Under the pieces are notes generated by a model, which did not search any database, had not been told where the DNA came from, and worked only from the letters and a program-made list of their open reading frames with translations. Positions 33,308-62,937 of a stretch of DNA of 64,000 nt are shown here, in pieces; position 1 is the first letter of the stretch; each line of letters begins with the position of its first letter. The stretch comes from Penicillus capitatus (Eukaryota > Plantae > Chlorophyta). Location: contig OZ287697.1 in assembly GCA_965649825.1 (NCBI GenBank), forward strand, positions 248,001 to 312,000, given 5' to 3'. The translations under genes were made by a program, and so were the position numbers.

Positions 33308-35358
33308 ATGCCTTTCGGTCACTGGTTGGTACTGTGCACACTAGCAGTCCTTTTTGTCATTCCCCTCTGTGAATGCGCTTTGCCAAACGACTTGAGCAAC
33401 TACCAGAACGAATACGCGTGCGATTCGAAGGTTCGTCTTGTCAGGTGACCCACCCAATCCCTGCGACGACATATCATCGAACTGAACCATGATTCAGGCC
33501 ACTGACCATTTCTGATGTTCAAACTGCCGTCACGACGCATACACGCGTTGTTCCTGTCGGGACAGGATTCTCATGGAATAGAGTAATTAGACGCTAGGCG
33601 CATTCAATGCCGCTAAATGGCTTTTATAGGAGTTCTTTTGCGCAAGTCCCCCTCACGCCAAGAAAGAAACGGCTGCCAATATCGTCATGACGACGATAAG
33701 GCCACTCACCATCGATGTTGACACAGACGAAATGTCTGCATGGGTGGCAGCCGGCGTGACAATCTGGGATCTCATGGTATATCTGGCCAACTATGTCACA
33801 CCGTCCTCTCCGAGAGGTGACCATCCTCTTCGTCCCGAATGAGATAGATCGTTGGCCTTTCCGACAGGCTATGCCATTGCAGCGCCGCCTTCCTTTGTGA
33901 ATCAGACGATTGCAGGAGCCATCGCAACGAACACACACGGGAGCAGTTTGAAGCACGGCTCGCTGTCGAATCAAGTCATCGGATTCAAGGTCGTGCTGGC
34001 GAACGGCACACATGTGGAGATTTTTCCGGAGAGCCATCCTCTCTACTTCAAGGCCTTTCAAGTCAGTGTGGGCCGTCTTGGAGTCGTAACAGATGTGAAG
34101 CTGAAAATTGTGCCCGAGAAGCTCGTCAGAAGGAGATTCAGTCCTAGCATACCTGCTGAGGAGTTCCTGACGGAGCTCCGACTCGCACAAACGTCCTATC
34201 GAAGCACGGGAAAGCTTCCCAGTTCATTCGACCGCGATCGTTTGGTGATTCTCTCATTGATCGATTTTTCCGTAAGTCCTTCTGGATCTCACTCTTTTTT
34301 ATTTGTGTGATCTCTGTCTGTAGTTTATGACCGTCACACTCGAAACCATTGAAGAAAAAATTCCTTTCAGCAAGACGAAACTGCCCGTGAATAATTCTTC
34401 TGATCTAGATATCTCTCAGCCTTTCTTAGAAGGAATAGAAATCAAAATCAACGGCGCCCTGTCGCTCGATCGCCGTGAAAAGGGTAGTGCTATCGCAGAT
34501 GGCGTCAACTGGAAAAAGCCATCCTCGCTTAAGATCACCGAAGGGATGAAAAAAGTGGCAGATCTACCGGAATATCTAAAATCCTCTGCCGAGTATTTTG
34601 AACAAGCTTTGGAAAACGTAAGTCTGGAAACGCATGAAGCATCTTTTACCTTCAGTGAAGAGGCTGCAGCGGCCGATGTCCTCACTCTACAAGACGGATA
34701 CGAGGTTGCCTTGCCAGTCGACAAAATGGCCGATTGCCTTCAAGGCATCGTGAGTTTTCTGAAGACAGAGAAGCCTGACAACGGCTTCCGCCTCTTTCCG
34801 ACGCTGAAAATCGTGGGAAAGGAAGAGGGATTGCTGTCTGCCTCTCATGACGGACCTGTTATGTGGTTTGGTCTTCAAGACCTTGTTTACTACAACCAAA
34901 AGTACGACCCCGCGATCGTCCTTCCTACCATCGTCTTCTCTTGTGCAGACCAAGATCCATTAACGAGCCCTTCAAGAGATTTATGGGCTATCTCGTGACG
35001 AACCAAGCCTGTTCGCCTGTTGGACTGCACTGGGGAGGAGCTGGTTGGCCAGATACTGGCTGTTTTAACGGAGCTGACGTCTATAAAGACACGTGGTGTG
35101 ATTTTGGCTGCGCCGTGCGCGCCTTGGACCCGGATGATAAGTTTATTGGATCTGCTCCTGACAGGTGACCCACTCCCATCTGTCACATCACTTTTCTGCA
35201 TTAGTATCCGTTTCAGGTGGAGTTGGGAGGGTGCAGACTTGGAAAGCTGCTGCACGAAGGACGGATTCAATCACGGAAAGAAAAATTGCGAATGCAAGGT
35301 GCAACGAACACGCCATTCTGTCGATTGTCCCCCTGCGCCCTTCTACACCGACAGATAG
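33308..35358 (+). CDS. Secreted FAD-linked aldonolactone oxidase-like protein (GULLO-like), paralog 1
   Basis: Signal peptide, LPNDLSNYQNEYACD, FAD domain TIAGAIATNTHGSSL, GRLGVVT, YEVALP, HWG motif and a Cys-rich tail ending PFYTDR*. Confidence 0.85.
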
Positions 35359-36140
35359 ACAACGCCTCTATGTTTCAACGTTTATCTGCCTGTGATTTTT
35401 GCCAGTTCATACCAAGACAACTTAGACTGGAACGCCATTGGTCGACGTGTCATTTGTGCATACAAATTGGCTCTGGTTATATACCCCTTAGGCTGTTCTT
35501 TTCCATGTAATCACCGTTTTTATTTCGTAGTCTGACAACATTGACGAATGTCATTGATGGAAGTGTGTGTCATACATCTGTTAAACAAGAAGAGGTCCCG
35601 TCTCCCTGCAGAGAGTTATGTATGAATGTTCCTTTATTGGTTCAAAGAGATAAGATTTGTGGCTTTTGGCGTTTGCTGCTGAACAGCCAGCCGCATGTGC
35701 TGAATCGTTTGTTTGTTAATCGACAAGTTTATGACCAAAAACGCAAACGCGTCGAATCCGAAGACCGCGCCGATACGAACACGACAAGGACCTACCACGT
35801 ACGCTTTCGCTTTGTGGACGCCATTCGAAGCGAAAATCTCAAAATGCGTCGTTTATCGATCGCTCGGCGTTTGAGTGCTCCTTCGATGACGCTGCTATTC
35901 TCGCCGGCGCTTTTTGGCGAGCCACTTTCTTGAGTCGGAATGGACGGAGACAGTACTACTGTCATCCTTCATTCTGTATGAATTTCATGGCGACTCCCGC
36001 AACCGACCTCGGTAATGGGAGGCTCTCAATCAAGAGACCGGTTTTGTCTCCCGGAAGTTAGAGCGAACCCACTGCCCCAATACCACACGTCTTTCTTTTC
36101 TGTGAGCCGAGACATCGTCGCACAGAACCTATTGTCGAAA

Positions 36141-36941
36141 ATGGTGTCCGGCATTGTTTGGAGAGCGCTCGTCCTTTTATTCGCCGTTGCGAAATTAGGT
36201 AACCTCGCAATCTTTGGCGGCGTTTTCGAAGAGTCTGTTTTCTGTTTAGGTTTTGCAACACCACATCATGACGGCGTGACGGCGTTGTCTGCGAAACCGA
36301 CGCGCAGTTTGAAAGGCATTGCCTGTTCAGGGGCGTCTTGCGGCTATGCGAATTCGGCAAGCGTTTCTAAATTCATTTCTTATCTCGCCGGAACAGCGGA
36401 CGACGTTTGCAACTGCACGTGCAATTCCGATGACGCCAGCCTTCTACACCTGGCGGCGGCGTCTTCGAACAAGCTCTCGAATATTATCATTCAGAGGTTG
36501 ATGAGTGAGAGATGCACACCAGAGGTTGTCGATCAAGGAGGCAATACGCCTCTTCATGATGCCTGCAAGGTCTGCAACATCCGCCAAGCAACAGTAATCT
36601 CTGCCATCTGGAAGAATGCGTTCCCACACTCTTGCGCTTCTATAGTACTTGATGCAGCGTTTAGCGTCGGTAATGACCGTGAACAAAGCAACAGAGACGT
36701 CCCTGTGCCTCTGCCTCATGAACTGTGAGGACGATGCGTATGGTCTCCTATCGATGATGCTCAAGAAATGGGACGGCGTACCGGAGAAGGATTGTCTCAT
36801 GTGCGGCAACATCAATGCGGTTCAAGCCTCAAAGGGCGCAAACATCAGCAGGGTAGGCATCTCTGCTGTCATCTACATAAACAATGGTCTTGCTTTGACG
36901 TGTAACAGGCTGTTGAAGACGTCATGAACTGTGGAGACTAG
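36141..36941 (+). CDS. Secreted Cys-rich protein with 2-3 ankyrin-like repeats (4 exons)
   Basis: MVSGIVWRALVLLFAVAKLG signal-like start, then SLLHLAAAS, GNTPLHDACK and ETSLCLCL repeats. The spliced frame ends AVEDVMNCGD*. Confidence 0.6.
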
Positions 36942-39162: not shown

Positions 39163-41860
39163 TTACATGATTAGACAGCTGCGGCCAACTTTTATCGTTT
39201 GTACGGTGTTTGCTTTAGCAGGTACTGCGCATTCCCTATAAAAGGGAACTCTGAAACTCAGGAGAGAAAATGAATCAAATTGCGAAAAAAATAAGACACG
39301 ACAGAACAGGACTGTGTACGTTTAAAACCATCAAATGACTCTGACAGTCAGTGTCATTTAAGAAGTGCTCATCGTTCATTAGAGCACAGACAAGGTCTCA
39401 TTAGAAAGATAGAACAATAGACCACCTGCCGGACAACAAGCACATGGCAAAGAAAAAAAGCAGAAATGAACGCCATCATCGATAGAAAGAAGAAAAGATC
39501 GAACAGGTTCATCTGTTGGTGTAGAACGGGGCGTCGGGACATTCCTCGCGGGTACGAATGGGAATGACATTGCAGTCACAACCATCCAAAGAGGTATTAT
39601 ACCCTTCGTCGGTGCAGCACCTCTCCAGATTGGCCCCATTCCAATTCCATCTGCGAAAGAAGGTAATCATTCAGCTTGAATTATTCTTTATCAACGGTGC
39701 ACCTGTCTGGGGCGGAACCAATGAACTTGTCTGTGGGATCGAGCGCTCTTACGGCGCATCCGAAATCGCACCAGGTATCCTTGTAGTGTTCGGCGCCGTT
39801 CCAGCAGCCGAAATCCGGCCATCCTGCCTTGCCCCAGTGCAGACGACTAGGCGAACAGGATTCGTTAGCCACGAGGTGAGCAATCAGCTGCTTAAACGGC
39901 AGATTGCTTGACCTCGGTCTAGATAGCAGAGCAACGTCACAGAGAGTCGGTACGCGATCAGACCACGCACTCTTGGTTGTAGAAAACGGTGTCGACAGTT
40001 TGAAACCAGACATAGGCTCGGTCGTGTGAAGCTGACAACAATCCGCTCTCCTTTCCGGCGAATCTGATTAAGAGAGGCCGCTGCAAAAATGTCTCAGCGG
40101 ACAGACCCTCGGCAAGAGTTAGAAAGCCGTCCATGCACTCTGCAAGGTTCTCCAGGGGCACCCCCACTTCATAATCGTCAATGGTATCCGTACTGTTAAA
40201 AATCTCTGGAGGAGCTAGTAACTCCACTTCGTGTCTATCTCCGGTGACGTTTCCAAACAGAATCGATAACCCAGCCGGAGAAGATTCGACAATCGATGCT
40301 GTCAAATCCGGATTGCTCAGATTCAGGTTTGGAGGACGCGGATCCGGAACGGTCCAGTCGACGCCATTAGCGATGGCAGAGCGAGACTTGTAGAAGCGAG
40401 CATTGGCAAGACTGCTGAACATTTGGTATGCGCGTGGAGGAGTAGCTTGAAAGTTTGCCTCGCTGTGAGAATCGCCTGTTAGCTCTCCACCGCGTTCTTC
40501 AGCTTCCAGATTCTCGAACGTCCAACGCGAGAACTGCAGATCGACCTTTAGCGCTGTCCAAACTCCGGGGTTTCTTACCGTGATGTTTTTGGCGAACGCG
40601 ATTATATACGTGACTCCTTCAATCCTCTCAGGTATCGTATCACCCGAAGCGTATGCTGATTGGATCTCTCTGATTTCCGAGAAGAAGTCCTCGCGATCTG
40701 TCGACTGCTTGATCGTCCTCTTGACGAGTGTCTCGCGAATGATCCGCATTTTCACGTCGGTCACGACGCCGAGGCGTCCGACGCTGACCTGAAAGGCCCT
40801 GAAGTACAGTGGATGTCTATCTGGATAGATCTCCGTCAGCGTTCCGTTGGCCAGCACCACTCTGAAGCCGATAACCTGGTTGGAGAGCGAGCTGTATGTT
40901 AAACTGCTTCCGTGCGTACTGGTTGCAACGGCACCTCCGATCGTTTGATTGACATAGATTGAAACCTTGCCCAGAGCGTAACCTGGAAGCATCTGTCTCG
41001 TTCTCTGAGAAAGACGAGTGGCGTGCAATCACCTCTAGGCGCGGCATCTGTGACGTAGTCTCCGAGAAAGGTTATTAGATTCCAGATGCTCACTCCTGCT
41101 GAAACCCAAACAGACATCTCTTCTTCGTCGACTCTGATCTTCGGACGGCGGATGGTGGTCATGACGATGTTGGCTGCCGTTTCGCCTTCCTCGAATGCAG
41201 CGTTGGCGCAGAAGAAACCCTGGTGCAAACACACACGCGTCAGAAAGAGGAGTTAATAGCAGGTTATAGTTGCGTCACCCTGTTGTAAGAGTGACCAACG
41301 CCGACTGGAGAGATGCGGTCGTGGCGTTTCACCGCTCTTCGCACGTCGCCGACTTTCTTTGGCCTGCATCAGTGGCAACGTCAGTGTTCTGAAGAAAGAT
41401 GTTTACTCGAAGACGACTTACCTCACGAGGCGGACTCTGGTGTCACATACGTATTCGTTAGAGTAGTTGCTTAGGTCGTCCGGCAATCTGCATTTCGCAG
41501 AGTGGAGGACGTGAAGAAGCGTGAGCCAAAATGCAATTGTCCGATAGGCAGCGGCCATCTTCCCTGGAGAAATCCGAGGTTGACGAGAAAACTGGTCCGC
41601 GTCGAAGCCGGTCGTCTTCGAGATTTTCGAGAGCTTGGAGTCGGCTGCAAACGAATAAAGCAAAGAGGAAAGAACGTTTCAGCGACAATTTGACGGTGAT
41701 GAATTCACTACCGAATTCATACAGACAGCGCGGCATTTCCGACCAGTTGCCTATTCTAAACGTGCTCTCGAGGCAGTACCTTCAAATGTCATCTGGACGT
41801 CATCCAGAGAACTGTCCGTCGACAGCCGACGGGCAATGCGCACAGGTTCTAATTCAGTCT
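39163..41860. repeat. Segmental duplication, copy 1 (paralog 2 plus flanks)
   Basis: Collinear with 50133-52830 including introns, UTRs and upstream sequence; offset about 10.97 kb. Confidence 0.85.
39509..41558 (-). CDS. Secreted GULLO-like FAD oxidoreductase, paralog 2
   Basis: MAAAYRTIAFWLTLLHVLHSAKC signal, VGVGHSYN, TIGGAVATSTHGSSL, RLHWGK and a Cys-rich tail ending PFYTNR*. Confidence 0.87.
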
Positions 41861-42484
41861 GTGGGATACTTCTCGACTCGGAAAGCTGTTTGTCGCTGTC
41901 TACATATATCTGCGTGTTGAGGCACGCAAATGCACATAATGATTCAAGCCGCCGTGTTAAGCTGCTACCGACACGAGGTTATCGACGCCTGTTTGGTCTT
42001 TCAATGAACAAAGCTGAAACGAATACAACAGAATGACAGTCGCTGAACAAAAACGACGAAATCTGCACAGAGCCAACGTCTCTCATCCGCGAGCGAAGAG
42101 AACTGCCACGCCTGTCTGACACCTCGATCTGGACTTCGATAATCGGGTTCGTCGGAAAGCTGACACTCAGAGGAGATCCCTTGAACAAGCCACGCAGTAT
42201 GACGAAAGAGGACTTAAACCGTGTTTCTACCTGTTTTGGGGAGATCGTCTGCCGGTCCTCGGAATCCCTATCTTGCGAGTCTTTCTGATACTGCGTGGAT
42301 TGCGAAGGACCAAAGCATTATGAATGGAGGTACTGTGAACAGGGATTCGCACATGAAATACAAAAACACGCTCCTTCCGAAGCTCACGGAGCAGCCTATG
42401 AAGATGCGAATCTGTGTGATAAGAGCGCAGAAGACATGACGGTCGCTCGCCATCGGCAACCGAAGCAGAGAACGCGAGGGTCCT

Positions 42485-42623
42485 TGTCGGGATAGAGTGC
42501 TGAACGACATGGACGGTGACTATTAAGGGTCACATCATCGATATAAATTAAAAAAACAGCATTAGGTTATTTGTATCTGACGTTCCCTTTTAAGCTTCTG
42601 TTTACACCAAACAAAAAGCGAAA
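42485..42623 (+). repeat. 5' LTR (139 bp, TG...AA)
   Basis: Identical by eye to 47434-47572; contains TATAAA. Confidence 0.92.
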
Positions 42624-42636
42624 TGGTTTCGGAGCG
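42624..42636 (+). other. Primer-binding site, tRNAiMet-like (TGGTTTCGGAGCG)
   Basis: Abuts the 5' LTR, resembles the plant iMet PBS TGGTATCAGAGC with two differences, and overlaps the gag ATG. Confidence 0.7.
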
Positions 42637-43861
42637 ACAATATCTATCCACTGAACGTCATGAGGTTGAGACCGCTCTCAACGCGGCCGCTATGGTCGCT
42701 GACGGTTATCGACCGCGGATGGCCAAAGTCATGGAAAGGGTCGAAGTCGGCTCGCCCTTGTTCGAGCTCTTCCGCCAGGTGACGGGGACCGCTGAGCCAC
42801 ATTTTGCAGAACTCGCCGCGTTTAACACTGCATTCGCGACAAGGGCCGCGGCCATCAAGAATTGTTTCCCTGCAGCAAAGGCGGCGATAAGCGATGAGGA
42901 CAAGTGGCACGTTTTTAAAGCAATGCTTCTGGCCCAATGCTCCACTGCAGGAGCCACTTCAGGAGAGAGGCTGGCATCTGCGAGCAAGAAAAAGGCGGAA
43001 TCTTGGCTACAGTTCGCGGAGAGGTTCGGAGTCATGGCAACTCAGTCTGGTCTAGCGAGGGAAATGCAAATAAAGCTGTTATATGGAAAACTCCCGCCAG
43101 CACTAAAGAGGGCAATCGCTAGTCTGCCCGTTACGGCTACGATAAATGAGATGATTCTGGTCATTAGAAACGTGACTTTTTGGACGGGGTCATCGTCTGC
43201 CGCTGAGGTGGATAAGGATGCCATGGAAGTGGATGCGATAGATGCAAATGGAGGAGGGAACATTTCCCATAACGTGGACAGTTTTGGCCAGACATTATCA
43301 TTACGAGAGCTCTGTGATGCAATGAGGAGTGAACTTGCCAGAAATCCTCGTTTTGCAAGCATTGCTGAGGACATTGTCGGACAGTGGCGCCAGAAGGGAT
43401 CGCAAGGCCAGTTCCAGAATCTAAGAGGAAATAAACGTTCTGGTCAAAGACGGCCAGCAAGGCAGTTTCAGGGAAACTGCTACCAATGTGGAGAGTATGG
43501 CCACTCAGCCAAATTCTGTCGCCAACGATCACACCACGTGCGGGAATCGCACCCAATACCAACACAGAATCACTTCGCACCGTTGGCTGCGTTTGAAGAG
43601 GAAGAGAGGGAGGACGACTCGGCATCTGTACTCTCCGTTGGCCTATCCCCGGCAACACAACGCGACATCTCTGCGAAGAAGGGCAAGCCCAAAGAGACAA
43701 GACTGATGGTTTTGAAGGAGGAAGACTCGGGAAAGGACACAGTCAAATATATCGATTATCCTCGAGTTGACCAGTCGTCGTCTAGCAGACCTCAAAGGGG
43801 TCGGGCTTCATTGAAAGTGGCAACTTACCTAGCCAACCGGCCGGAGAAGGAACAAGCTCTC

Positions 43862-44201
43862 TGTAGGAAATGAACCCTTAACTGTCATCTGTGTAACCAC
43901 CGGAAGCGGTGGAGCCGTCACATAACCATCCAGGCGCGCCGACCATCGGTCGCGACGGATGTCGGCTCTCGACCTAACTTCCCCATAACGTAAGGGGTGT
44001 GGTTATGCTGCATGCACTAGGAGTTCGCAGCTGTTAGGACGTAAGGTTAGGAAGTCCATAACCACCCTGGGTATATAAGGTCGACATTTCACCCTGTAAA
44101 CACTCCTGTTCGTATCGCATCAAATCTGATTGCGTTTCCGTCGTCTCAACGCGCAAGGACTCGACTATCGTCTGAACCACTCTTACATTCGATTCCCAAC
44201 A
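43862..44201 (+). mobile_element. Solo LTR (family A), 340 bp, TG...CA, 5-bp TSD CTCTC
   Basis: TGTAGG...CCCAACA is flanked by CTCTC (43857-43861, 44202-44206), has TATATAA at 44072-44078, and is homologous to 7034-7371. Confidence 0.92.
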
Positions 44202-44466
44202 CTCTCATTGACACTGGGGCAGAGGTATCGTTATTGCCGCTTCAGTATTGCCAGCGCTGGGGTCTTCGAGTAAAGCGAGTGGAAAACACTCAACTACGTG
44301 GGTTCAATAATTCAACCAGTCAAGTCACCGGCGAGGTCATTCTGCCGACGCGCATTGGCGGCTGGAATCAAGCAATTCCCTACTATGTGACCGATGCGAC
44401 TAATAAGGTGATCCTCGGGTATTCGGCTTTGAAAACTTTTGGTATCTCGGTGGACTGCTCCAATGA

Positions 44467-47400
44467 CTGCTTCCTTGGGACAGACGGTCATGTGGTATTC
44501 TGTCACTCGGTCTCTTCAAACTAGCTCCGCCAGGTCATGGCGCTTCGCCTGGCGTGACGCTTCGAGTAGACCGTGCCCTTCTTAAGGGTGCTGAACCAAG
44601 TATCTCTCAAACATCTTTTATTCTCAAACTCGGCCGAACTCTTTTCCTGACACCTTTTGAAAGTCGCTTATCAGTCCTTCCGGTTAGTGTGCTTGGTGGA
44701 GGCCTTACTGGCCTGTTTTCGTGTTGTTTTCTTCGAGACGTTTCGGTCAATCCTATTCTCGGAAAGAACGGTCGTGTTTCTGTCCGTATTCACAATTTCT
44801 CCGACCGCCTCACTACACTTTCCCCTAAGTTGAAAGTCGTTCGAGGAACCTTTTCCGGAAGTGGGCGGATTCTTAATGACCCACAACTCGTTTTACGACT
44901 TACTTCTCAGGATTCCCCCACATCCGAGCGCCCGGATGTTGGTTTGGAATCGTCACCTTCGTTTTCTGTTTGGCAATCTCGTTTTCCGTACCTTTTTACC
45001 GACAATGATTCTAGTTATGCGACGTCTTCTACACTCCGTGCGCTTGTAGTAAGAGCTGACGATTTGATCTGGAAGTCCCCGGTCCCGTTTGCAGACTCGG
45101 GTGCTCCTCCTTGCTTTACTGATTGTTCTGCCCAGCATGCGCGGCACGAGATTGAATCCTCACTTTCCCGTGGCATTATACAAGAAGTTCCTCGTTTTGA
45201 CCGTGGGTTTTTCTCTCCTGTCATTTTTCTTCGTAAACCTGACGGCCGTGTACGCGTGGTGGTTAATTTTCAAAAATTAAACCACTATTCCGAAGTCTGG
45301 AATTCGCACACTCCAGACACACGAACAGCTATTCGCGCTGTTGAGCCTTCGTGGCGTTTCTTTACCATCCTTGATCTTCGCGATGGGTATTTTCATATTC
45401 CAGTGGACACTGCCCTCAGTCGCCTGTTTTGTTTTTCCTGTTTTGGCCGTCGTTTCCGTTTTGTCACTCTTCCTCAGGGCTGGGCCTCAAGTGTCGGTTT
45501 CTTCAACGACCGTATCCGCCGAATTCTTGGCCATTTACCTGGATTAGCTTATTTCGATGACATTATTGTTGGTGGCCAGGATCGCGTTTCACATGATCGC
45601 AATTTAGAAGCTGTTCTGACCGCTCTCCAATCCGCCGGTCTGCATGTGAATCCGCGCAAGGTCCAATTCTGCCGCCCATCGGTTCAGTTTCTTGGATTTT
45701 CTCTCTCGGGTGATCAATATCATCAGCGCAATTTTATCTCACAACAACTTGCACAGTTGCCGCTGGTTCGATCTCGTAAGGAATTACAGCGTGTATTGGG
45801 AATTTTTACTGCTTGTCGCGGCAATTCCCCTGGCTTGGGAATTGCTCTTGCACCTCTTTACTCCCTTCTTCATAAACAAGTCCACTTCATTGATTGGTCA
45901 GAAGTTCAAAATCTCATCCGTGCTGTAGCTGCCCGGTTAATTCGCAATTCGCTGAATTTCCTCCGTTGTGTCGCATCCCCAAGTTTTCATCTTGAAGTTG
46001 ATTGGTCGGGAGCCGGAGCTGGCTATCTTCTCTATGCGGGTCATCGTTCACAACGCCGCATCATTGCTACTAACTCGCGTAGTCTTCATGGCTATCCTGT
46101 CAGCTCTTTTCTTGGTGAGCTTGACGCTATTATTTGGTGTCTGCAAGACACTCTTCCCCTTACTGTCGGCTGCCCTGTTCATTTATATACAGACTCACTC
46201 AGCGCGTTACAAAAACTCCAGGCTCGGGATGTTTGGTACAAATCACGTTCTGATCTACGTGTGGGTCGCCGCCTGGGATGGCTGTGGTCTAATTTTCCTC
46301 TACACACCCGACTGTTCTTGCATTTCTTGCCGTCTTCGGATAACTTTCTCTCTGACTGTCTTTCCCGTTGGCCCACTTTAGCACAGCGGAAGGAAGTGGA
46401 CCTAAATGTTATACAAGGCGGAGAGTATAAAGGGCAAAGGAAAAGATTGCAAGCGGCGCATGAAGGCCACTGGGGAGTAAAGAAAACAGTACTAAATTTA
46501 AAAAGAGATGGGGGCCCGAAGTGGAGAGGGATGGAAAGAGATGTTCAAGAATATGTGGCGAATTGTTGGACTTGTCAGATGTGGGGACAGGTACAACACA
46601 GAGTGGATTTGGGAATCACAACGGCAACTGGAATTGGAGACGCTGTGGGTATTGACTTTGCTGGTCCGTTACCGATTAAGGATAGAGAGGAGCCAAGATA
46701 TATCCTTGTGATGGTGGACTACCTCTCACGATGGGTCGAAGCATGGGCTTGTACTGCCCCAAGCAGCGAAGTGGCAGTAAGAGCATTAGGAAAGTGGAGA
46801 CAGAAAAATGGCAAGATCAAAATGCTCGTGTCAGACAATGCCCAAACATGGCGATCCAAGGAAGTGAGGAGTTGGTGTGAAAGGAACAAGACTGTGCAGC
46901 GACTGACGGCCAGTTACATGCCTCAGTCAAATGGGATGTGTGAGAGACAGATAGGGGTGCTCAAGGGGAGACTAAAGAGGATGGCAAAGAATCCTTGGGA
47001 GTGGAGGAAGGTTCTACCCACGGCGACTCGCATTATGAACCGCTCGGTAAATGAGACCACTGGATATAGTGCCGCGGAGTTGAAGAATGGAGAGATGAGG
47101 AATGGAAGAAAGGTAAATAATGAAGTCCAGAAGAGGTGGATTCAAGAAGCAATGGAGAAGACATTGAAGCGGCAGGAATACACGAATGAACTGAGAAGGA
47201 AAAAGTTTGGAAGTAGGAAACGAGTTAAATTGGGAGATCATGTGCTGAGGCCAAGAATAAAAGCTGATGCGGGCACATTTCGCCCACCATGGGATGAAGA
47301 GCCATGCGTGGTAAAGGAGGCCCTGGGAAACAGCCTATGGCTAGTAGAGGGTTTACTTTTTGGGAAAGTCTATAAGGTTCACGACGATCAACTGAGACAA

Positions 47401-47475: not shown

Positions 47476-47572
47476 GGGTCACATCATCGATATAAATTAA
47501 AAAAACAGCATTAGGTTATTTGTATCTGACGTTCCCTTTTAAGCTTCTGTTTACACCAAACAAAAAGCGAAA
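47434..47572 (+). repeat. 3' LTR (139 bp)
   Basis: Identical by eye to 42485-42623; its first 42 nt encode the end of integrase. Confidence 0.92.
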
Positions 47573-50132: not shown

Positions 50133-52830
50133 TTACATGATTAGACCATTGCGGCCTACTTCCACCGTTTTTTCTCGGTGTTTTTCTAAACATGTACGAT
50201 GCATTTTCTGTTGAAGGGAAATTTTAAACGCAGAAGGACAGACGAATCAAATACAGAAGAATGAGCACGATAGAACAGAACTTTGCAAGTTTAAAGCCAG
50301 CAAATGACTCTGACAGTCAGTACCATTCATAGGAGTACTCATCACTTCATCAGAGCATAGACACGATCTCAAGGTAGAACAATAGACGTCAGCAGGACAA
50401 CAGCCACATGACAGAAAAAATCAGGCAGAAATGAATGCCATCATCGATAGAAAGAAGAAAAGATCGAACAGGTTCATCTGTTGGTGTAGAACGGGGCCTC
50501 TGGACATTCCTCGCGGGTGCGAATGGGAATCACATTACAGCCGCATCCATCCAAAGAGGTATCATACCCTTCGTCGGTACAGCACCTCTCCAGATTGGCC
50601 CCATTCCAATTCCATCTGCGAAAGAAGGTAATCATTCAGCTTGAATTATTCTTTATCAACGGTGCACCTGTCTGGGGCGGAACCAATGAACTTGTCTGTG
50701 GGATCGAGCGCTCTTACGGCGCATCCGAAATCGCACCAGGTATCCTTGTAGTGTTCGGCGCCGTTCCAGCAGCCGAAATCCGGCCATCCTGCCTTGCCCC
50801 AGTGCAGACGACTAGGCGAACAGGATTCGTTGGCCACGAGGTAAGCAATCAGCTGTTTGAAAGGCAAATTGCTTGACCTCGGTCTAGATAGCAGAGCAGC
50901 GTCATAGAGAGTCTGTACCCGATCTGATTACGCACTCTCTGTTGTAGTAGAAGAAGTCGACAAGTTGAAACCAGACGTATGCTCGGTCGTGTGAAGCTGA
51001 CAGCAATCCGCTCTCCTTTCCAGCGAATCTGATTAAGAGAGGCTGTTGCAAAAATGTCTCAGCGGACAGACCCTCGGCAAGAGTTAGAAAGCCGTCCATG
51101 CACTCTGCAAGCTTCTCCAGCGGCACCCCCACTTCATAATCGTCAACACTTCCCGGCCTAGTTATACTTTCTATGGAAGCAAGTAACTCGACTTCATGTG
51201 TGTCTCCGGTGACGTTTCCAAACAGAATCGATAACCCAGCCGGAGAAGATTCGACAATCGATGCTGTCAAATCCGGATTGCTCAGATTCAGGCTTGGAGG
51301 ACGCGGATCCGGAACGGTCCAGTCGACGCCATTAGCGATGGCAGAGCGAGACTTGTAGAAGCGAGCATTGGCAAGACTGCTGAACATTTGGTATGCGCGT
51401 GGAGGAGTAGCTTGAGAATTCGCCCCGTTGTGAGAATCGCCTGTTAGCTCTCTACCGCGTTCTTCAGCTTCCAGATTCTCAAACGTCAAACGCGAGAACT
51501 GCAGATCGACCTTTAGCGATGTTCAAATGCCAGGGTTTCTTACCGTAGTGTTTTTGGCGAACGCGATGAAGTACGTGACTCCTTCAATCCACTCAGGGAT
51601 CGGCTCACCCGAAGCGTAAGCTGCCTGAATATCTCTGATTTCCGAGAAGAAGTTCTCGCGGTCAGTCGACTGCTTGATCGTCCTTCTGACAAGCGTTTCG
51701 CGAATGATCCGCATTTTCACGTCGGTCACGACACCGAGGCGTCCGACGCTGACCTGAAAGGCCCTGAAGTACAGTGGGTGTCGATCTGGGTAGATCTCCG
51801 TCAGCGTTCCGTTGGCCAGCACCACTCTGAAGCCGACAACCTGGTTGGAGAGCGAGCTGTATGTGAAACTGCTTCCGTGCGTACTGGTTGCAACGGCACC
51901 TCCGATCGTCTGATTCACAAAGATTGAAACCTTTCCCAGAGCGTAACCTAGAAACATCTGTCTCGTTCTCCAGGAAAAAAGAGGAGAATGTAATCACCTC
52001 TAGGCGCGTCATCTGTGACGTAGTCTCCGAGAAAGGTCATCAGATCCCAGACGATCACTCCAGCCGACACCCAGACAGACATCTCCTCTTCGTCGATTTC
52101 AATCTTCGGACGGCGGATGGTGGTCATGACGATGTTGGCTGCCGTTTCGCCTTCCTCGAATGCAGCGTTGGCGCAGAAGAAATTCTGGTGGAAACACACA
52201 CGCGTCAGAAAGACGAGTTTATAGCAGGTTATAGTTGCGTCACCCTGTTGTATGAGTGGCCAACGCCGACTGGAGAGATGCGATCGTGGAGTTTCACCGC
52301 TCTCCGAACGTCGCCAACTTTCTTTGGCCTGCATCAGTGGCAACGTCAGTGTTCGGAAAAAATGTTTACTCGAAGATGATCTACCTAACGAGGCGGACTC
52401 TGGTGTCACATACGTATTCGTTAGAATAGTTGCTCAGGTCGTCCGGCACGCTGCATTTCGCAGAGTGGAGGACGTGAAGAAGCGTGAGCCAGAATGCAAT
52501 TGCCCGGTAGGCCGCGGTCATGTCGCCTGGAGAAATCCGAGGTTGACGAGAAAACTGGTCCGCGTCGAAGCCGGTCGTCTTCGGGATTTTTGAGAGCTTG
52601 GAGTCGGCTGCAAACGAATAACGCAAAGAGGAAAGAACGTTTCAGCGACAAAGTGACGGATGACGAATTCACTACCGATTTCGTACAGACAGCGCGGCAT
52701 TTCCGAGCAGCTGCCCGTTGTACAACGTACTGACGAGGCAGTACCTTCAAATGTCCATCTGGACGTCATGCTGAGAACTGTACGTCGACAGCCGATGATG
52801 GACGTTTCACATGGGTTCTAATTCCGTCTA
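50133..52830. repeat. Segmental duplication, copy 2 (paralog 3 plus flanks)
   Basis: Collinear with 39163-41860. Confidence 0.85.
50474..52521 (-). CDS. Secreted GULLO-like FAD oxidoreductase, paralog 3
   Basis: Near-duplicate of paralog 2: MTAAYRAIAFW signal, VGVGHSYN, RLHWGK, PFYTNR*. Confidence 0.87.
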
Positions 52831-52897
52831 CGGAAAACAGAAAAACACTTGCACGTTCGGTATCTATTGATCAGCGAATCCCGAAAGGGACAAATCA

Positions 52898-54890: not shown

Positions 54891-56954
54891 ATGCAGCGAC
54901 TCTTGCTTGCCTCTGTCCTCTTCGCCGCGTTCTTTGGCGCACAAAGCTGGCTTCCAGAACACTTGAGCAACTTTCAGAACGAGTATGCGTGCGACTCAGG
55001 CGTCCGCCTCGTTAGGTACGTTCTCGCAAACACAGCCAGCAGCAGTCTGCAAACGACACCCTGTCGCAGGCCACTGACCATCTCTGACGTGCAAGAGGCC
55101 GTGAAGTTGCATTCCCGAGTGACACCAGTTGGAAACGGACTGTCCTATAATAAGGCAAGTCAGGCTGTCTGCCACTCGGGATCTCCAACCGATGACGTAC
55201 CCTTCCTTCTATCAGGAGTTTTTCTGTTCGGAGCCTCCGCCTGGAAGCAAGAAGACATCTGCCAATATCGTCATGACAACGATCAGGCCACTGACCATCG
55301 ATGTGGATGAAAGCGCGTTATCCGTATGGTGCTCGGCTGGCGTCACCATCTGGGATCTTATGGCCTTTCTTGCGAATTACGTGACACCGTCGTCTCCACG
55401 GGGTGCGTCTCGATGTCTCTATCTCCTCCGATCGACGGGTGTGGAGTTCTCTGTAGGGTATGCCATCGCTGCACCTCCCGTCGCTCTCAATCAGACCATT
55501 GCTGGAGCTGTTGCGACCAACACACATGGAAGCAGTCTACGGGATGGATCTCTCTCGAATCAAGTCATCGGTTTCAAAGTTGTCTTGGCCAATGGCACGT
55601 TCATGGAGATCTATCCAGACAGCCATCCACTGTGCTTTAAGGCATTCCAGGTCAACGTCGGACGACTGGGTGTCGTGACGGACGTGAAAATGAGGATCAG
55701 ACCGGAAACGTTCATAAAGAGAAGAGTGATGCCAGGAATTCCGACAGAAGACTTCATGAACCAACTCGCTTTAGCTCAGCACTCATACAGGATGACGAAA
55801 ACGTTGCCGCCCTGGCTCCAAAACGATTTCGAATTTACACTCTCTTTGAAAGACTTCACAGTAAACCAACCCCTTCCACCCTTGCCTTCTGACTTGATGG
55901 GGTGCCTTAGTTTACCACCACCACTTTTGAACAGGCAGGCGAACCCGTTGCCGTTGAAAAGAATGAGAAAAAGGGTGTTGACAATGACGAAGAAGAAGAA
56001 GAGTTGAGTTACCATCAACCTCTGTTGCAACAAATCGAGACTGCCATGAATCCTTTCCTGAATCAGAGCCGCCAGGAGAAAGGCGGCATCATTGCAGATG
56101 GTGTGAAGTGGGAGAAACCTGTGCCGCTGGCGATCGATGCACGACAGACAAATCGCGATCAATTTCCGCCGCCCTTTGAGACGAACGTCGGCGGTGCTGG
56201 AAAACAGAAACCAAATGCAACGGTCGAAGCACACGATGCTTCATACATTTTGTCGGAAGGGGGAGCTGACGATGCGCGTTCTATCTTACTTGACACCTAT
56301 GAGGTGGCTGTTCACGTGGACAAGATGGCAGACTGTGTTCAGGGACTCATCAGTCGTTTGCAAGTACTGAAGCCAAACAACGGCCTCCGTTATGACCCGT
56401 TGTTCCGTTTCGTCGGCAAGGAAGACAGTCTGCTGTCCGCTTCCAATGACAAGCCCGTTCTCTGGATTAACTTTCAAGACAGTGTCTTCTACAACCAAGC
56501 GTCTGGCGATGGCCATAGCGATCTGTTTTGAAGGTGTCTGTGTGTTTAGGACTAGGACAGTCAACAAACCCTTCAGAGAACTGATGACTTATTTTGTAAC
56601 GAGCAATCAGTGCACTCCTGCACGTTTGCACTGGGGTAAAGCTGGTTGGCCAGATACCGGTTGTTGGAGCGGAGCCGATTTTTACGAGGGGACTTGGTGC
56701 GATTTCGGCTGTGCCGTCCGAGACTTGGACCCTGATGGGAAATTCGTCGGATCGGCACCGGACAGGTATGACATGCGACGTACCCGCCGCCGATCGAATC
56801 GTTTTGTCGCAGATGGAACTGGGAAGGCGCAAATCTCGAAGAGTGCTGCGCCGAGTTTGGCTACGATTACTTTCGGGCTGGCTGCGGCTGCAAGGTGAAG
56901 CCAGAACGCGCCGAGTCCTCCTGTCCAGATCCTCCGTACTACACCAACCGTTGA
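54891..56954 (+). CDS. Secreted GULLO-like FAD oxidoreductase, paralog 4
   Basis: MQRLLLASVLFAAFFGAQS signal, VGNGLSYN, THGSSL, RLHWGK and tail PYYTNR*. Intron 55155-55215 is GC-AG. Confidence 0.87.
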
Positions 56955-57947
56955 ATCCCCGTTGTTTGACTTGACGGACGATGATTCATGCTGTTACGTT
57001 ACTGACAATGACGACATCTCATCCGGGGTGGAACACATTCGCAAACAAAGCTATCCATTTGCGACGCTTTTTTTGGTTATACCTATATTGAGTCAGAATC
57101 ATGATTTTGCACAAAGAAGACGACCGAGAACCGCATTCTTCGAAGAGCGATGTTAACGGATGTACAGCACCGTCTAGAAAAGTTGATTCAGCATTTGTTA
57201 TATCAACCGTGCCGTGTACACGGGAAGTGTGTTTTGCTATGTGCTTTTCATGGTACGGATCACAGTGAGAGCTTTCATATATAAGCACGCATCTTATCTG
57301 GGTCTTACTTTGATGATCATCAAAGCGTTTATTGAAGTCCTGTTTCCGACGCGATAGTCACCTTTGCGATTGGGACAAACTTGCACATACAGCATCAGCA
57401 TCTGTTGTCAAATATTCAACGCTGAGATACTCGAATTCGCATGACGGTCACGCGCAGACAGATCTCGACACGTCACATCATCATCGCTACGAAACGCCAT
57501 CCCACTTGGATGTCTGTTCACTCCTTGTCAAGCCCAGCACATCTTGGAGTCGTCATGCCTGACAATCGGCGGTGAATGATCCAAATGATCTGATCTCTGC
57601 TTCTTTAGCACGGTGCGCCGAAGGCAGTCCTTCTGAAGGAGTTGGTCTAGGTGCAGCGCATTCAGATGTGTGTAGGAAAGGGGTCCACTCAGAGGCCATG
57701 GCCTGCTGTCTTGTGGAGATAGCAGCGGGATATGTACGACAGTCATCCGTCGAGTACCTTCACCGTCCATGCATCGATGATCCAATTCCGTGCCCTGCCT
57801 CGATCGACGATGCAGATCGCGTCCTTCGTCGAGCGACGAACCGTAGGAAGGACGAGCTTCGCATGTGCTCCACCAAAAGTTCCCAATCCTTTAAATTTTC
57901 CACCGTGCTACGGGGAGATGTCTTCAGATAATCCAAGACGCTCCCAG

Positions 57948-59988
57948 ATGAAGACGCTGTGCACAACCTATGTCCTCTTCATTCTTCTAGCACTCGGCAG
58001 CTGTTCGCTCCCACATGACCTCAGCAACTTTCAGAACGAGTATGCGTGCGCGTCAGATATACGCCTCGTCCGGTTCGTTCACTCACATCCATCATGACGT
58101 CTACGATAATGCATGACCCACGGTTCAGGCCCGTGACCATCGCCGACGTTCAGGAAGCGGTGAAGGTGCATTCCAATGTGGTGCCTGTCGGAGCGGGGTA
58201 CTCATGGAACAGAGTAAGGCAGCAGCTGCCAAAGCGTATGGACTATAAGGCAGCTGTCTTTGAATCAGGAGTTCTTTTGTGCCGAGTCGCCATCCAGAGG
58301 CAATCGGACAAGTGCCAATATCGTCATGACGACGATACGGCCACTGACCATTGACGTGGACGAGGAGGAGATGGCGGCCTGGGTATCGGCAGGCGTGATG
58401 GTCTCGGATCTCATGGTATTTCTGGCAAACTATATCACGCCGTCGTCGCCCAGAGGTAGACCGGTGGCCTCTGGCAAGGGAACGATGGGGTTTGGGTGCA
58501 GGGTACTCTATTGGCACGACGCCCTACTTTGTGAATCAGACGATTGCTGGAGCGATCGCCACCAACACACACGGCTACAGTTTGCGAAACGGCTCCCTGT
58601 CGAATCAGGCCATCGGCTTTCGGGTGATTCTGGCCAACGGCACCCTAGCGGAGATCTCTCCCGATCATCATCCTCTCTATTTCAAAGCTTTTCAGGTCAA
58701 TGTCGGTCGCCTGGGCGTCGTGACAGACGTGAAGCTGCGATTGAGACCTGAGACGCTCATGAAAAGAAAGGTGAGGAAAGGGATCCCAACAGACGCGTTC
58801 ATGTCAGACATTCAACGAGCGCAAAGTCTGTATCGATCGAACGGGACCCTTCCCAGTTGGCTCCAAAACGATTTTATGTTCAGCTTTTCGTTAGACGACT
58901 TTACGGTGAGCGTCTTTACCCTCCAGTTAATACTTAACACTGTTGTGTGGGTCAGTTCACAACGACGATGCTGGAACCCATTGAGGAGCCCGTTGCAAAG
59001 GGGAAGAAGGAGGAGGAAGTGGATGAAGAAGACACGGACCCAGTCTACGCGCATTCTTTTTTGGAAGCTGTCGAGAGTCGAATGAATCGTTATCTCAATC
59101 TGAGTCGCTACGAAAAGGGAAGCACTGTTGCGGACGGCATCACATGGGAAGAACCTGAGCAGCAAGATATCATTCCTCTCGACACGCTGTTCCACAATGT
59201 CTCACTCTTTTCCGAGGCGTTAGGCAGATCCTATGACGACGATGATAATATCACGGTTGAAGCGAACGAGGCCATGATCACACTTACGGCAGAGGCCGCC
59301 GAAAATTCTCGAGCCATACTTCGAGATGCTTACGAAGTGGCCGTCTATGTTGACAGGATGGCAGATTGCCTTCAGGGATTTATCTCTCTTTTACAAGCCC
59401 AAGCATCGAACAGCGCTCTCCGTTTTTCTCCCCTGTTTCATTTCGTTGGCAAGGAGGAAGCTTTGCTCTCCGCCTCGCATGATCAGCCTGTCCTGTGGGT
59501 CAGTTTCGCGGATGTGGTTTACTACAATCAGAAGTGATATCTGCTATGGTATGGCGTCGTATGCATCTCTGTGTTCTCTGTAGGCCTAGAAACATCAATT
59601 TACCTCTTAGACAGCTCATGGCATATCTCTTGTCCAGCAACGAGTGCACTCCAGCTCGCCTGCATTGGGGCAAAGCTGGATGGCCTGATTTTGGCTGCTG
59701 GAACGGAGCTGATGCCTACAAAGACACTTGGTGTGATTTCGGCTGCGCCGTTCAGGCTCTCGATCCCCAAGACAAGTTCATCGGTTCCGCACCGGATAGG
59801 TCAACTCTCCCCCTTATCGCTCCGGCATTGCATAGTTGCCTGACAGGTGGAACTGGAAAGGGGCACGTCTCGAGGAATGTTGTACGGCGTTCGGCTACGA
59901 TACCGACCGAGAAGGATGCGATTGCAAGGTGGCGTCCCCTCGTCCCCTCTCCTCCTGCCCGGACGCTCCTTTCTATTCCAACCGCTAG
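57948..59988 (+). CDS. Secreted GULLO-like FAD oxidoreductase, paralog 5
   Basis: MKTLCTTYVLFILLALGSCS signal, VGAGYSWN, THGYSL, RLHWGK and tail PFYSNR*. Confidence 0.87.
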
Positions 59989-60880
59989 ACATGACACCAC
60001 CCTCTTTTCTTTGACAGTTAACTTCTGTTGACAGCGTTGCTGTCACATGCAGATCTCCTTTTTGATTCCGTCTGACAATGACTGACGCTTTCCAAACTTC
60101 AAGCTGTGCATGCAGTCTGTTAGCCTTTTTTATTTTTCAATGTTAGATCACGCTACGGCGTTGTGATCTGGTGATATCTGAAAGCTTGTTTCCAGAATGG
60201 GCCAATACGGGACGAAGCACAATGACAGTTAGCAACACATTGCATTCTTTCCGATCCTTCTGACGACGTACACGCACGGGGGGTTATTTCTTTTATCTCT
60301 GTTCCTGGGCTGTGCCTATGACGGAGATACAGCTACGAAAGCAGATCGCGGTCGACGTCACATATTGAACACCGTTGCTTCCCTTGCATGACCATTCCTG
60401 CGATTGCGTTGTGGACGATATCCCTATCGAAACAGAACATCGATTTCTTTTGACAGCTATGACAAAATCCTTCACTGCCAGGAAGTCCGTCTCTTATCGA
60501 GAACTGGATTTCGAATGCGTCTTTACTGGGCTATGGTCTCCTTGTCCTCTGACGATCGACGCCAGAAAATGGCGACGTGATGCTGTGTCAGCATTCTGCT
60601 CCTGCTGATGTAACAGAAAACGTTGTTGCCGGATGATACAGTACAGGTGGTCGAATGGATGGATGCGGTGAAGGGCTCGGCGATGGAGCGATCGATTTGA
60701 TCGAATTGAGACGACGTGCGGTTCAGATCTGCGAAATCGGGCCTATATGCACGCATGACGTCGTCTGTACGGGAAAATGCGTTGACGTAGCAGAGACACT
60801 AGCGGCCAACAATCGTTTGATTCTTTGCGTGGCCAGAGTTCCTTAACGAAACTCTCCAGAATAGGCAAACGTCATTTGCG

Positions 60881-62937
60881 ATGCGGGCGTTATTTTTTGC
60901 CGCTCTCCTTTTTGCCTTTTCCTGCGTCATCCGCAGTGCACCGCCAGAGGACCTTAGCAATTTCCAAAACGAATATGTATGCGATTCGGATGTTCGTCTC
61001 GTCAGGTGCGCACCGCCGCCGCCGACGAGGCCTCAGCGGACGCGGCTCGTGGTCTAGGCCGATGAGCGTCGCCGATATTCAGGAGGCCGTCAAGCTACAT
61101 TCCAATATCGTCCCTGTCGGTCTTGGGCATTCGTGGAATAAGGTCCGGTCCTGCGAAGCTGTCTGTCAGCCGCCATCCTTCTGACATCCGCGTTGTGGGC
61201 GTTAGGAATTTTTCTGCGCTGCCTCTCCGTCTAAGGGCAAGAAAACGAGTGCCAATATTGCGATGACCACGATAAGGCCGCTCACGATTGATATCGATGA
61301 GAGTGACCCTTCCGTCTGGGTCTCGGCAGGTGTCACCGTGTGGGACCTCATGCTGTACCTGGCGAACTACGTCACGCCGTCGTCTCCCAGAGGTCAGCCG
61401 CCACTGTCCGGCCTTCCTCAATACGATGCGATTTCTCACAGGGTATGCCATTGCTGCCCCTCCATCTTGTGTGAACCATACGATCGGCGGGGCTATTGCA
61501 ACGAACGCCCACGGAAGCAGTCTGATGCACGGGTCGCTATCGAATCAAGTGTTGGGCTTTAGGGTCGTCCTGGCCAATGGCACACTGGCAGAAATCTTTC
61601 CAGATACCTTTCCGCTATATTTCAGAGCTTTCCAGGTCAGCGTGGGACGACTTGGCGTGGTGACAGATGTCAAACTACGTATCGTGCCGGAAACGCCTAT
61701 GAAGAGAAAACAGCAGTCAGGAATTCCGCCGAAGGACTTCGTGCTGACACTCAGAGATGCTCAAGATCTGTACCGAACGTCCAAAACGCTGCCGGGCTGG
61801 CTGAACCAGGATCTCATGTTTACCTTTTCGTTGCGAGACTACACGGTAAGCCGCCGAATGCGCCGTGCCTGTATGAGTGTCATTGTGTGTCAGTTCACGA
61901 CGATCAGTCTCGAGCCGACGAGTGAAGTGCCAGTGCCCGAGAGGAAGAGAAAGAAGAGACAGGGCCAAGGGTTGGAGTACTCGCAACCGCTATTGGAAGC
62001 GTTGGACGTCAAGATGAACCATCATCTAAAACTCAATCGCCGGAAGAAAGGCCGCTCCATCGCCGCAGGCGTACAATGGACGAAACCCGTTTCGCTGCAA
62101 CCGGATCCTCGCTACGCAGATCTGAGAAATCTGAGAGAGTTTCAGGAACAGTCCGATCGGATAACGAAGCAGTTTTTGGGCAACACGACTGGCGAAACAC
62201 ACCAAACCGCACTCATCTATACAGAAGAACGTGCATCTGCGACGCAGAACGTTTTGCAGGATGTCTACGAAGTCGCCGTTCATGTGGATAAAATGGCAGA
62301 CTGCATTCAAGGACTGATCAATCTTTTACAAACAACGAAGCCTGACAACGGCCTCCGTTCCGCTCCGATGTTCCGATTCACTGGTAAAGAGGAAGGCTTG
62401 CTTTCCGCCTCCAGCGAGAAACCTGTCCTCTGGATCGAACTGATCGACAAAGTCTATTACAATCAGGGGTACGGTTACAGTGGGGACGATGCCTTCTGAT
62501 CTGCTCTGTCTGTTATGCAGGGTCAGGTCTGTCAATGTCCCGTTTAAGAAACTCATGGAGTATCTCGTGACGAGTCATCAGTGCACACCTGCCCGACTGC
62601 ATTGGGGCAAGGCGGGATGGCCAGATCGCGGTTGTTGGAATGGAGCCGAGCGCTTCATCCATACATGGTGCGATTTCGGCTGCGCTGTCCGCGACCTGGA
62701 CCCCGATGGTAAATTCGTTGGATCGGCCCCCGACAGGTAACGGAGTGCCTTCTTTTCGGTGCCCGATGTGAATGTCGTTCATCGTGTGGATCTAGGTGGA
62801 ATTGGAAGGGCGCGAATTTCGATGAGTGTTGTAGCGATTTCGGCTACGATTACATCCGCCAAGGCTGCGGATGTAACGTCAATCTGATTCGTGTCCCATC
62901 GGAGTGTCCAGAGGCTCCGTTTTACAGCAACCCCTAG
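60881..62937 (+). CDS. Secreted GULLO-like FAD oxidoreductase, paralog 6
   Basis: MRALFFAALLFAFSCVIRS signal, VGLGHSWN, AHGSSL, RLHWGK and tail PFYSNP*. Confidence 0.87.

Follow-up and report, generated by a model that had tools for sequence, protein, structure and literature searches.

An array of green-algal VAO-fold flavoprotein genes, putatively secretory, with replacements at the flavin-linking histidine

The stretch of DNA analysed here (the window) comprises 64,000 nucleotides of Penicillus capitatus (contig OZ287697.1, positions 248,001 to 312,000 of the forward strand) and contains an array of paralogous genes, named c1 to c6, for flavoproteins of the VAO fold that differ from one another at the residue which in related enzymes carries covalently bound flavin adenine dinucleotide (FAD). 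Gene models, built from six-frame translation and junction-by-junction comparison of the copies, gave the following six genes, for which we list the residue at the flavinylation site together with the equivalents of an active-site Arg, of the Lys of an HWGK motif and of an O2-gatekeeper residue where these distinguish the copies.

33308-35358, plus strand: c1, 7 exons, 582 amino acids; Phe at the flavinylation site, Lys433 as the Arg equivalent, Gly494 (HWGG) as the HWGK Lys equivalent
39509-41558, minus strand: c2, 7 exons, 577 amino acids; His70, Arg428 and Lys489 kept, Ser at the O2 gatekeeper
50474-52521, minus strand: c3, 7 exons, 577 amino acids, 91% identical to c2; His, Arg and Lys kept
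54891-56954, plus strand: c4, 7 exons, 582 amino acids; Leu66 at the flavinylation site, Arg433 and Lys494 kept, Pro at the gatekeeper
57948-59988, plus strand: c5, 7 exons, 578 amino acids; Tyr66 at the flavinylation site, His429 as the Arg equivalent, HGS changed to HGY, Lys490 kept
60881-62937, plus strand: c6, 7 exons, 577 amino acids; His66, Arg428 and Lys489 kept, Pro140 at the gatekeeper, Cys142 unique among the copies

None of the six coding sequences has an internal stop codon, and each gene is interrupted by six introns of 45-63 nt, whose positions and phases are identical from c1 to c6. GT-AG borders were found in 35 of the 36 introns, the exception being c4 intron 2 (55155-55215), which is GC-AG with the donor GCAAGT. 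The original prediction had placed six intact paralogs with common intron positions at 33308-62937, and the gene models bear this out in full, the limits of that interval being the ATG of c1 and the stop codon of c6. An apparent in-frame TGA in c3 sits within its 45-nt intron 4 (51499-51543), which rules out that c3 is a pseudogene; the counterpart of this intron in c2 (40534-40578) also measures 45 nt and is in frame and free of stops, and its retention would add 15 residues.

The array continues past the edge of the window. One homologue, P0012, led to a 1.46-Mb contig of the ENA metagenome assembly ERZ25074695, which is 99.86% identical to window positions 56290-64000; the window therefore belongs either to this contig or to a nearly identical strain. 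In a stretch of this contig, L001, whose numbering is used below, tblastn revealed three extra copies of the c2 type after c6, just past window base 64000.

L001 9434-11476, plus strand: c7, His kept at the motif, frameshifted in exon 1 by a one-base insertion (+1 G)
L001 12772-14820, plus strand: c8, intact, 578 amino acids; motif P-V-A-T-G-F-S, that is, Phe at the site and the first Gly of G-x-G changed to Ala
L001 18753-20797, plus strand: c9, intact, 577 amino acids, His at the motif

In c7 the final three introns are in frame and stop-free and leave an open reading frame (ORF) of 492 amino acids. No further copy was found after c9 on the contig stretch searched, nor by tblastn in window positions 1-33300. 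The array thus totals nine genes, six of them in the window, and the count of six is an effect of the window edge, because c7-c9 adjoin its end on the same contig. Self-blastn of the window and blastn against L001 also resolved a duplicated unit that carries c2 and c3, of which additional copies lie past the window end.

39163-41829, no strand assigned: segmental duplicate carrying c2, about 90% identical to 50133-52795
50133-52795, no strand assigned: segmental duplicate carrying c3, partner of 39163-41829

The arrangement of the array is one of tandem and inverted duplication.

Profile searches identified the FAD domain of these proteins and set them apart from the named lactone-oxidase families. 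A Pfam scan of c1, c2, c4, c5 and c6 (c3 being 91% identical to c2) matched FAD_binding_4 (PF01565) in all five, with 49-60 bits against a cut-off of 26.4 and with E=1e-13 for c1. The Pfam ALO model (PF04030), with a gathering score of 23.1 bits, was passed by c6 (29.1), while c4 (20.6) and c5 (15.4) fell below it and c1 and c2 gave no match at E<=0.1. The curated models TIGR01678 (sugar 1,4-lactone oxidases; 67-68 bits versus a cut-off of 396.8), TIGR01679 (bacterial FAD oxidoreductases; 62-71 versus 292) and TIGR01676 (GalDH; 24-47 versus 458) matched in the N-terminal domain only, and TIGR01677 (plant GULLO, pln_FAD_oxido) reached 34-45 bits versus 383 and covered only residues 21-237 or so. 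These hidden Markov model (HMM) cut-offs exclude the copies from the plant GULLO family and from the true lactone oxidases; the 'GULLO-like' label of the original prediction, which had come with the suggestion of such an HMM check, finds no support, with TIGR01677 scoring far below its cut-off and ALO passed by c6 only.

The homologues come almost entirely from green algae (Bryopsis, Volvocales, Sphaeropleales, Trebouxiophyceae and prasinophytes). The closest are 50-52% identical, the best named one among the matches listed is from Bryopsis sp. (42%), and no land-plant protein occurs among the 120 best homologues listed. An exhaustive phmmer search of 1.84 billion representatives returned 56 proteins at E<=1e-30, several homologues carry the database names 'L-gulonolactone oxidase' or 'D-arabinono-1,4-lactone oxidase', and a literature search found no paper on the green-algal family. 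Judged by sequence, this is a separate, uncharacterised family that appears restricted to green algae. An AlphaFold2 model of c6 (predicted local distance difference test, pLDDT, 89.1; predicted template-modelling score, pTM, 0.89) gave as best PDB matches in Foldseek the alditol oxidases 8OT8 and 2VFS (template-modelling score 0.76-0.79 on the target) and the ancestral GalDH 8QNB (0.72), and Foldseek probability was 1.00 for alditol oxidase, GalDH, DprE1, cholesterol oxidase and cytokinin oxidase, which identifies the fold as the two-domain VAO fold of FAD and cap domains. At the start of exon 5 of c4-c6 (55911-56010, 58956-59050 and 61894-61980) the cap domain contains a hypervariable, charged, low-complexity stretch, for example EKNEKKGVDNDEEEEE and PERKRKKRQGQG, with pLDDT 54-60. 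The Volvocales homologues are about 800-1000 amino acids long versus about 580 here.

All eight intact proteins begin with a hydrophobic leader of 21-25 residues (maximal Kyte-Doolittle value 2.0-3.1 over 9 residues), which forms a low-confidence helix in the c6 model and is followed by a conserved mature N-terminus, P-x-D/E/H-L-S-N-F/Y-x-N-E-Y-x-C. Twelve Cys are invariant in the mature proteins, five of them within the last 36 residues, and most of the twelve are invariant or nearly so across the wider family in an alignment of 37 sequences. Five of these Cys belong to a C-terminal extension of about 45 residues, which is well modelled in c6 and which alditol oxidase lacks. Neither an endoplasmic reticulum (ER)-retention tail nor a further transmembrane or hydrophobic segment was found in the eight intact proteins. 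The common leader and Cys-rich tail that had been noticed from the sequence are thus present, entry into the secretory pathway is plausible on the basis of these sequence features, and we infer that the proteins would be extracellular.

At the G-x-G-[H]-S motif, the codons of the six window copies read as follows.

33568-33570, plus strand: c1, TTC, Phe
41291-41293, minus strand: c2, CAC, His
52256-52258, minus strand: c3, CAC, His
55140-55142, plus strand: c4, CTG, Leu
58199-58201, plus strand: c5, TAC, Tyr
61128-61130, plus strand: c6, CAT, His

The series Phe, His, His, Leu, Tyr, His had been called correctly, with all six positions exact. Positional equivalence was established by aligning a 37-member family profile with PDB sequences, in which alignment the family motif 'avGvGhSwn' matches 'vLGSGHSFN' of alditol oxidase and 'pVGSGLSPN' of GalDH; the variable residue thereby coincides with the His of alditol oxidase and the Leu of GalDH, confirming that it is the FAD-linking His position. 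In the 37-sequence alignment G63, G65 and S67 are invariant, and the intervening residue is His in 30 of the 46 homologues from outside the window, the others having Trp (Volvocales), Phe, Tyr, Gln, Arg, Ala or Leu. With the downstream copies included, the His is present in c2, c3, c6, c7 and c9 and replaced in c1 (Phe), c4 (Leu), c5 (Tyr) and c8 (Phe). In GULO and ALO the FAD is linked by an 8-alpha-N1-histidyl bond, and in plant GalDH a Leu lies near the dimethylbenzene ring and FAD is held non-covalently (PMC11099136, PMC11505616). Since the variable residue occupies the 8-alpha-N1-histidyl-FAD position, the His copies would be able to flavinylate covalently through it and the Phe, Leu and Tyr copies would not, and it is from this residue that we infer the mode of flavin binding of each copy.

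In GalDH, Arg388 and Lys456 stabilise the substrate alkoxide and form the conserved catalytic pair of the aldonolactone oxidoreductases (PMC11099136), and the T. cruzi enzyme, when mutated at its HWXK Lys, loses activity but not the flavin (PMC11505616). In the profile alignment to PDB sequences the family 'iRf' lies on alditol oxidase 'IRT', and in this low-scoring segment the Arg388 equivalent is Arg in c2, c3, c4, c6, c8 and c9, Lys in c1 and His in c5. The Glu of the E-x-R motif (GalDH Glu386-x-Arg388) is hydrophobic in all copies. The Lys456 equivalent aligns with the HWGK of alditol oxidase, c2-c6, c8 and c9 reading LHWGK and c1 LHWGG. Residue Ala113 of GalDH is the O2 gatekeeper (PMC11099136), and oxidases carry Gly or Pro there (PMC11505616). 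At this site (NFAS in GalDH, NFGS in A113G) the same profile alignment gives Pro in c1, c4, c5, c6, c8 and c9 and Ser in c2 and c3. Only c6 has a Cys two residues past the gatekeeper Pro140, namely Cys142 (61468-61470), in A-P-P-S-C-V-N-H-T-I-G-G.

A table of these residues across the family showed that the Arg and the Lys are invariant in almost all homologues, including those with Trp, Ala, Leu or Arg in place of the His. The exceptions are c1, c5 and the transcript-like homologues P0003 (Tyr at the site; Arg changed to Phe, Lys to His and HGS to RLG) and P0004 (Gln at the site; Arg changed to Thr and Lys to Tyr). At 77 family-conserved columns, c1, c5 and c8 deviate seven times each and the His copies four to five times. 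Loss of the His is thus of two kinds, one in which the catalytic pair is kept (c4, c8, P0001 and the Trp clade) and one in which it is dismantled as well (c1, c5, P0003 and P0004). Going by these substitutions, c1 and c5 may be rewired or inactive, not conventional enzymes.

A neighbour-joining tree with 100 bootstraps resolved group A (c1, c4, c5 and c6; 99%), group B (c2, c3, c8 and c9; 100%) and group C (P0001-P0004, from another organism; 100%), which together form a clade (100%). Each group has both His and non-His members, and with His as the ancestral state this means at least four independent His losses within the clade. Elsewhere in the family the His was lost several more times; the Volvocales homologues, for example, have a conserved Trp along with the intact Arg/Lys pair, and Gonium pectorale LSYV01000217.1 (L006 10001-22164) carries a head-to-tail pair, P0008 and P0010, both with Trp. 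Bryopsis has a single copy, with introns 1 and 2 in common with the array genes. The Phe and Tyr homologues P0001 and P0003 are uninterrupted ORFs of 575 amino acids on contigs of 2.0-2.3 kb with flanks resembling untranslated regions (L002, JGI 3300008030, and L004, JGI 3300008031), the form expected of spliced mRNA, and such variants are therefore probably transcribed in a related alga. A literature search gave no paper on either JGI sample.

All copies are under purifying selection, the ratio of nonsynonymous to synonymous divergence (dN/dS) being 0.08-0.30 for every computable pair. Between c1, c4, c5, c6 and the genes of group B, synonymous divergence (dS) has reached saturation, and together with the low dN/dS this indicates that the non-His copies are old and constrained. 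Between old paralogues identity is 16-51% in the cap domain versus 62-73% in the FAD domain; no positive selection was detected in the cap domain, where regional dN/dS is <=0.58 wherever dS is informative, the values near 1.17 coming from saturated c6-c2 comparisons. Copy c8 is a mosaic, with a dS to c9 of 0.12 over residues 461-531 and of 0.8-1.1 in the cap domain, a contrast indicating that gene conversion has homogenised its 3' end with that of its neighbours.

The surroundings of the array are ordinary. The flanking genes comprise cytochrome P450 exons and genes for a zuotin-like zinc-finger protein, a MYST histone acetyltransferase and AP-2 alpha adaptin, a weak ankyrin-like ORF lies between c1 and c2, and a Ty3/gypsy-type retrotransposon with long terminal repeats (LTRs) separates c2 from c3.

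7727-8950, minus strand: flanking gene
10118-11458, plus strand: flanking gene
17082-17972, minus strand: flanking gene
27174-28352, plus strand: flanking gene
36015-36728, plus strand: weak ankyrin-like ORF
42485-47572: Ty3/gypsy-type LTR retrotransposon
42485-42623 and 47434-47572: its LTRs, 139 bp, 100% identical
42623-43873: gag-like ORF with zinc knuckle
44554-47475: pol ORF with reverse transcriptase, RNase H and integrase

The insertion is recent, because the paralogous segment L001 15748-21055 is without the element. A PEP carboxylase gene lies about 7 kb downstream of the array. No Pfam domain was matched in the intergenic ORFs, and with ordinary neighbours we rejected the idea of functional partner genes nearby. 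What had been put forward as an 'undescribed system' is a duplication array among ordinary neighbours with no sign of a coordinated system; at this locus an enzyme family has expanded, and no new type of system is involved.

The reading we favour, and hold to be probable with some reserve, is that of a birth-and-death array of paralogues encoding green-alga-specific secretory flavoproteins of the VAO/PCMH fold that fall into three functional classes. Each protein would enter the secretory pathway by a cleavable leader and would probably be stabilised by up to six disulfides, including those of the Cys-rich C-terminal extension, which characterises the family as a whole. The ancestor would have had the His forming 8-alpha-N1-histidyl-FAD, the equivalents of the Arg388/Lys456 pair stabilising the substrate alkoxide for hydride transfer to flavin N5, and Pro or Ser at the O2-gatekeeper site, and its duplicates would then have diverged mainly in the substrate-binding cap domain. 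In class I (c2, c3, c6, c9 and, with its frameshift, c7) all three residues, His, Arg and Lys, are kept; its members are probably covalent oxidases or dehydrogenases whose substrate would be a polyol, a sugar or a lactone-type compound, oxidised at a secondary alcohol. Covalent flavinylation raises the redox potential of the flavin and improves retention of the cofactor. Class II (Leu in c4, Phe in c8) keeps Arg and Lys and would bind FAD only non-covalently, with a lower flavin redox potential to be expected. Class III, composed of c1 (Phe, Arg to Lys, Lys to Gly) and c5 (Tyr, Arg to His), has lost the canonical pair and may perform different chemistry or serve as non-catalytic binding proteins. 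The direction of the redox shift, the activity classes and the type of substrate are what the active-site residues would predict.

Several points weigh against this reading. The Arg388 equivalence depends on the second domain in the alignment of the profile with alditol oxidases, where the score is low (7 bits), and in part on background correspondences between alditol oxidase and GalDH. The Lys of c1 and the His of c5 are conservative replacements of Arg in charge and might still support catalysis. Leaders were judged by hydropathy and conservation only, and the phylogeny is by neighbour joining only, a tree that gene conversion can distort. A Pro gatekeeper, moreover, is no guarantee of oxidase activity, as Arabidopsis GULLO5 has the Pro and no oxidase activity (PMC11505616).

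The original prediction had seen in the locus six active extracellular enzymes, a panel of covalent and non-covalent flavoproteins that would differ in substrate, electron acceptor or redox potential and would serve, at the wall or at wounds, to produce H2O2 or to act on sugars or lactones. Its structural core, covalent and non-covalent flavin encoded at one locus, is sound insofar as the site was rightly identified; a series graded in redox potential is too simple, given the changed catalytic residues of c1 and c5. That every copy is intact and under purifying selection, that the strongly diverged cap domains would fit different substrates, that non-His variants with Arg and Lys are stably kept elsewhere, as with the Trp of the Volvocales, and that a precedent exists in nectar, where a secreted GulLO-like protein of a plant weakly forms H2O2 (PMC6077269), all speak for such a panel. 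However, both catalytic residues are changed in c1, where the HWGK Lys is missing and a Lys stands in for the Arg, and c5 combines a His at the Arg position with an altered HGS motif; the GULLO and lactone-oxidase HMM cut-offs are missed; no partner genes lie nearby; and there is no evidence that ties the locus to co-regulation, wounding or the wall. We regard the panel as unlikely, if worth keeping in mind. More improbable still, in our judgement, is that the non-His copies are functionless duplicates on their way to pseudogenes and that only the His copies matter: the excess of deviations at conserved positions in c1, c5 and c8 (7 versus 4-5 in His copies), the frameshift already present in c7 and the even more degenerate active sites of the related transcripts P0003 and P0004 would fit decay, but c1, c4 and c5 are old by their saturated dS and yet retain full-length ORFs, all splice sites, the 12 Cys and a dN/dS of about 0.1, and the Phe and Tyr homologues of another organism are uninterrupted full-length ORFs on mRNA-like contigs. 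The database names of some homologues, together with the common fold and HWGK motif, might suggest terminal enzymes of ascorbate biosynthesis, that is, true orthologues of GULO, ALO or GalDH. This we consider very improbable, since scores stay far under the TIGR01676, TIGR01677 and TIGR01678 cut-offs, the Glu of GalDH Glu386-x-Arg388 is hydrophobic here, the leader and the disulfide-rich architecture are unlike the mitochondrial or ER-membrane ascorbate enzymes, and green algae use a mitochondrial GalDH (PMC11066809).

A bolder proposal, which we rate as a long shot, is that some of the non-canonical copies harbour flavin-protein chemistry new to the alditol/aldonolactone oxidase clade: 8-alpha-O-tyrosyl-FAD formed from the G-x-G-Y-S loop in c5 (also in P0003 and P0028), bicovalent attachment through His66 and Cys142 in c6, or flavin-binding or flavin-free secreted pseudo-oxidases of the c1 type working with active paralogues. 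The spacing of c6 Cys142 would match that of the 6-S-cysteinyl Cys of the bicovalent BBE/glucooligosaccharide-oxidase enzymes, and by this spacing c6 might be bicovalent. If any one of these three ideas were true, the family would be a natural evolutionary series for the gain, loss and replacement of covalent flavinylation.

Among known systems, the alditol oxidase AldO (PDB 2VFR/2VFS, and 8OT8 from an actinomycete) is the best PDB match in both sequence and structure. It has the VAO fold with its two domains in common with the algal proteins, as well as the His of G-S-G-H-S, the Lys of HWGK and, putatively, the Arg of I-R-T. It is, however, a cytosolic bacterial protein of about 420 amino acids without a leader, the conserved disulfide set or the Cys-rich C-terminal extension; identity is 17-19%, the Glu of its E-x-R motif is replaced by a hydrophobic residue in the algal proteins, and some 100 more residues, among them the disordered hypervariable loop, make up the cap domain of the algal proteins. 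The aldonolactone oxidoreductases GULO, ALO and GalDH (PDB 8QMY/8QNB/8QNR, 7SML, 7A24) show the same dichotomy of covalent His and non-covalent Leu at the same site (PMC11099136, PMC11505616) and also have in common the gatekeeper position, the HWxK motif with its Lys and, putatively, the Arg of the catalytic pair. They are targeted to mitochondria or to the ER membrane, whereas the algal proteins have putatively secretory leaders; their site is only His or Leu, whereas in the algae F, Y, L, W, Q, R and A are also seen; and their switch lies between kingdoms, whereas the algal one occurs among paralogues of one locus. The land-plant GulLO-like proteins (Arabidopsis GULLO1-7 and MsGulLO of Mucuna nectar) are likewise multigene and diverged from true GULO; they have a signal peptide, as the algal proteins putatively do, and are cell-wall or extracellular proteins with weak or uncertain lactone activity and possible H2O2 production (PMC6077269, PMC11505616, PMC11066809). 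Their model TIGR01677, though, matches only the N-terminal 200 residues or so of the algal proteins. Enzymes of the BBE-like/glucooligosaccharide-oxidase type, which are secreted VAO-fold oxidases of plants and fungi bearing disulfides or glycans, likewise form expanded multigene families and vary in their covalent-linkage residues among paralogues (PMC4898691), but they are distant profile matches (E about 1e-4 to 1e-5) with a different C-terminal BBE domain and are without the ALO-type HWGK.

With this array a family of probably disulfide-rich, putatively secretory flavoproteins comes to light that occurs widely in green algae; in several genomes its members wrongly carry the name 'L-gulonolactone oxidase'. 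Gain and loss of covalent flavinylation have so far been studied mainly between kingdoms, by comparing GULO and ALO with plant GalDH. At this locus the His has been switched repeatedly, in paralogues both young and old; related algae show the same change in parallel, and in some copies the Arg/Lys pair has been lost along with the His. The family would therefore provide a natural series for asking what covalent FAD brings to an extracellular oxidase, which residues can substitute for the His, and whether catalytically dead proteins of the VAO fold serve any function.

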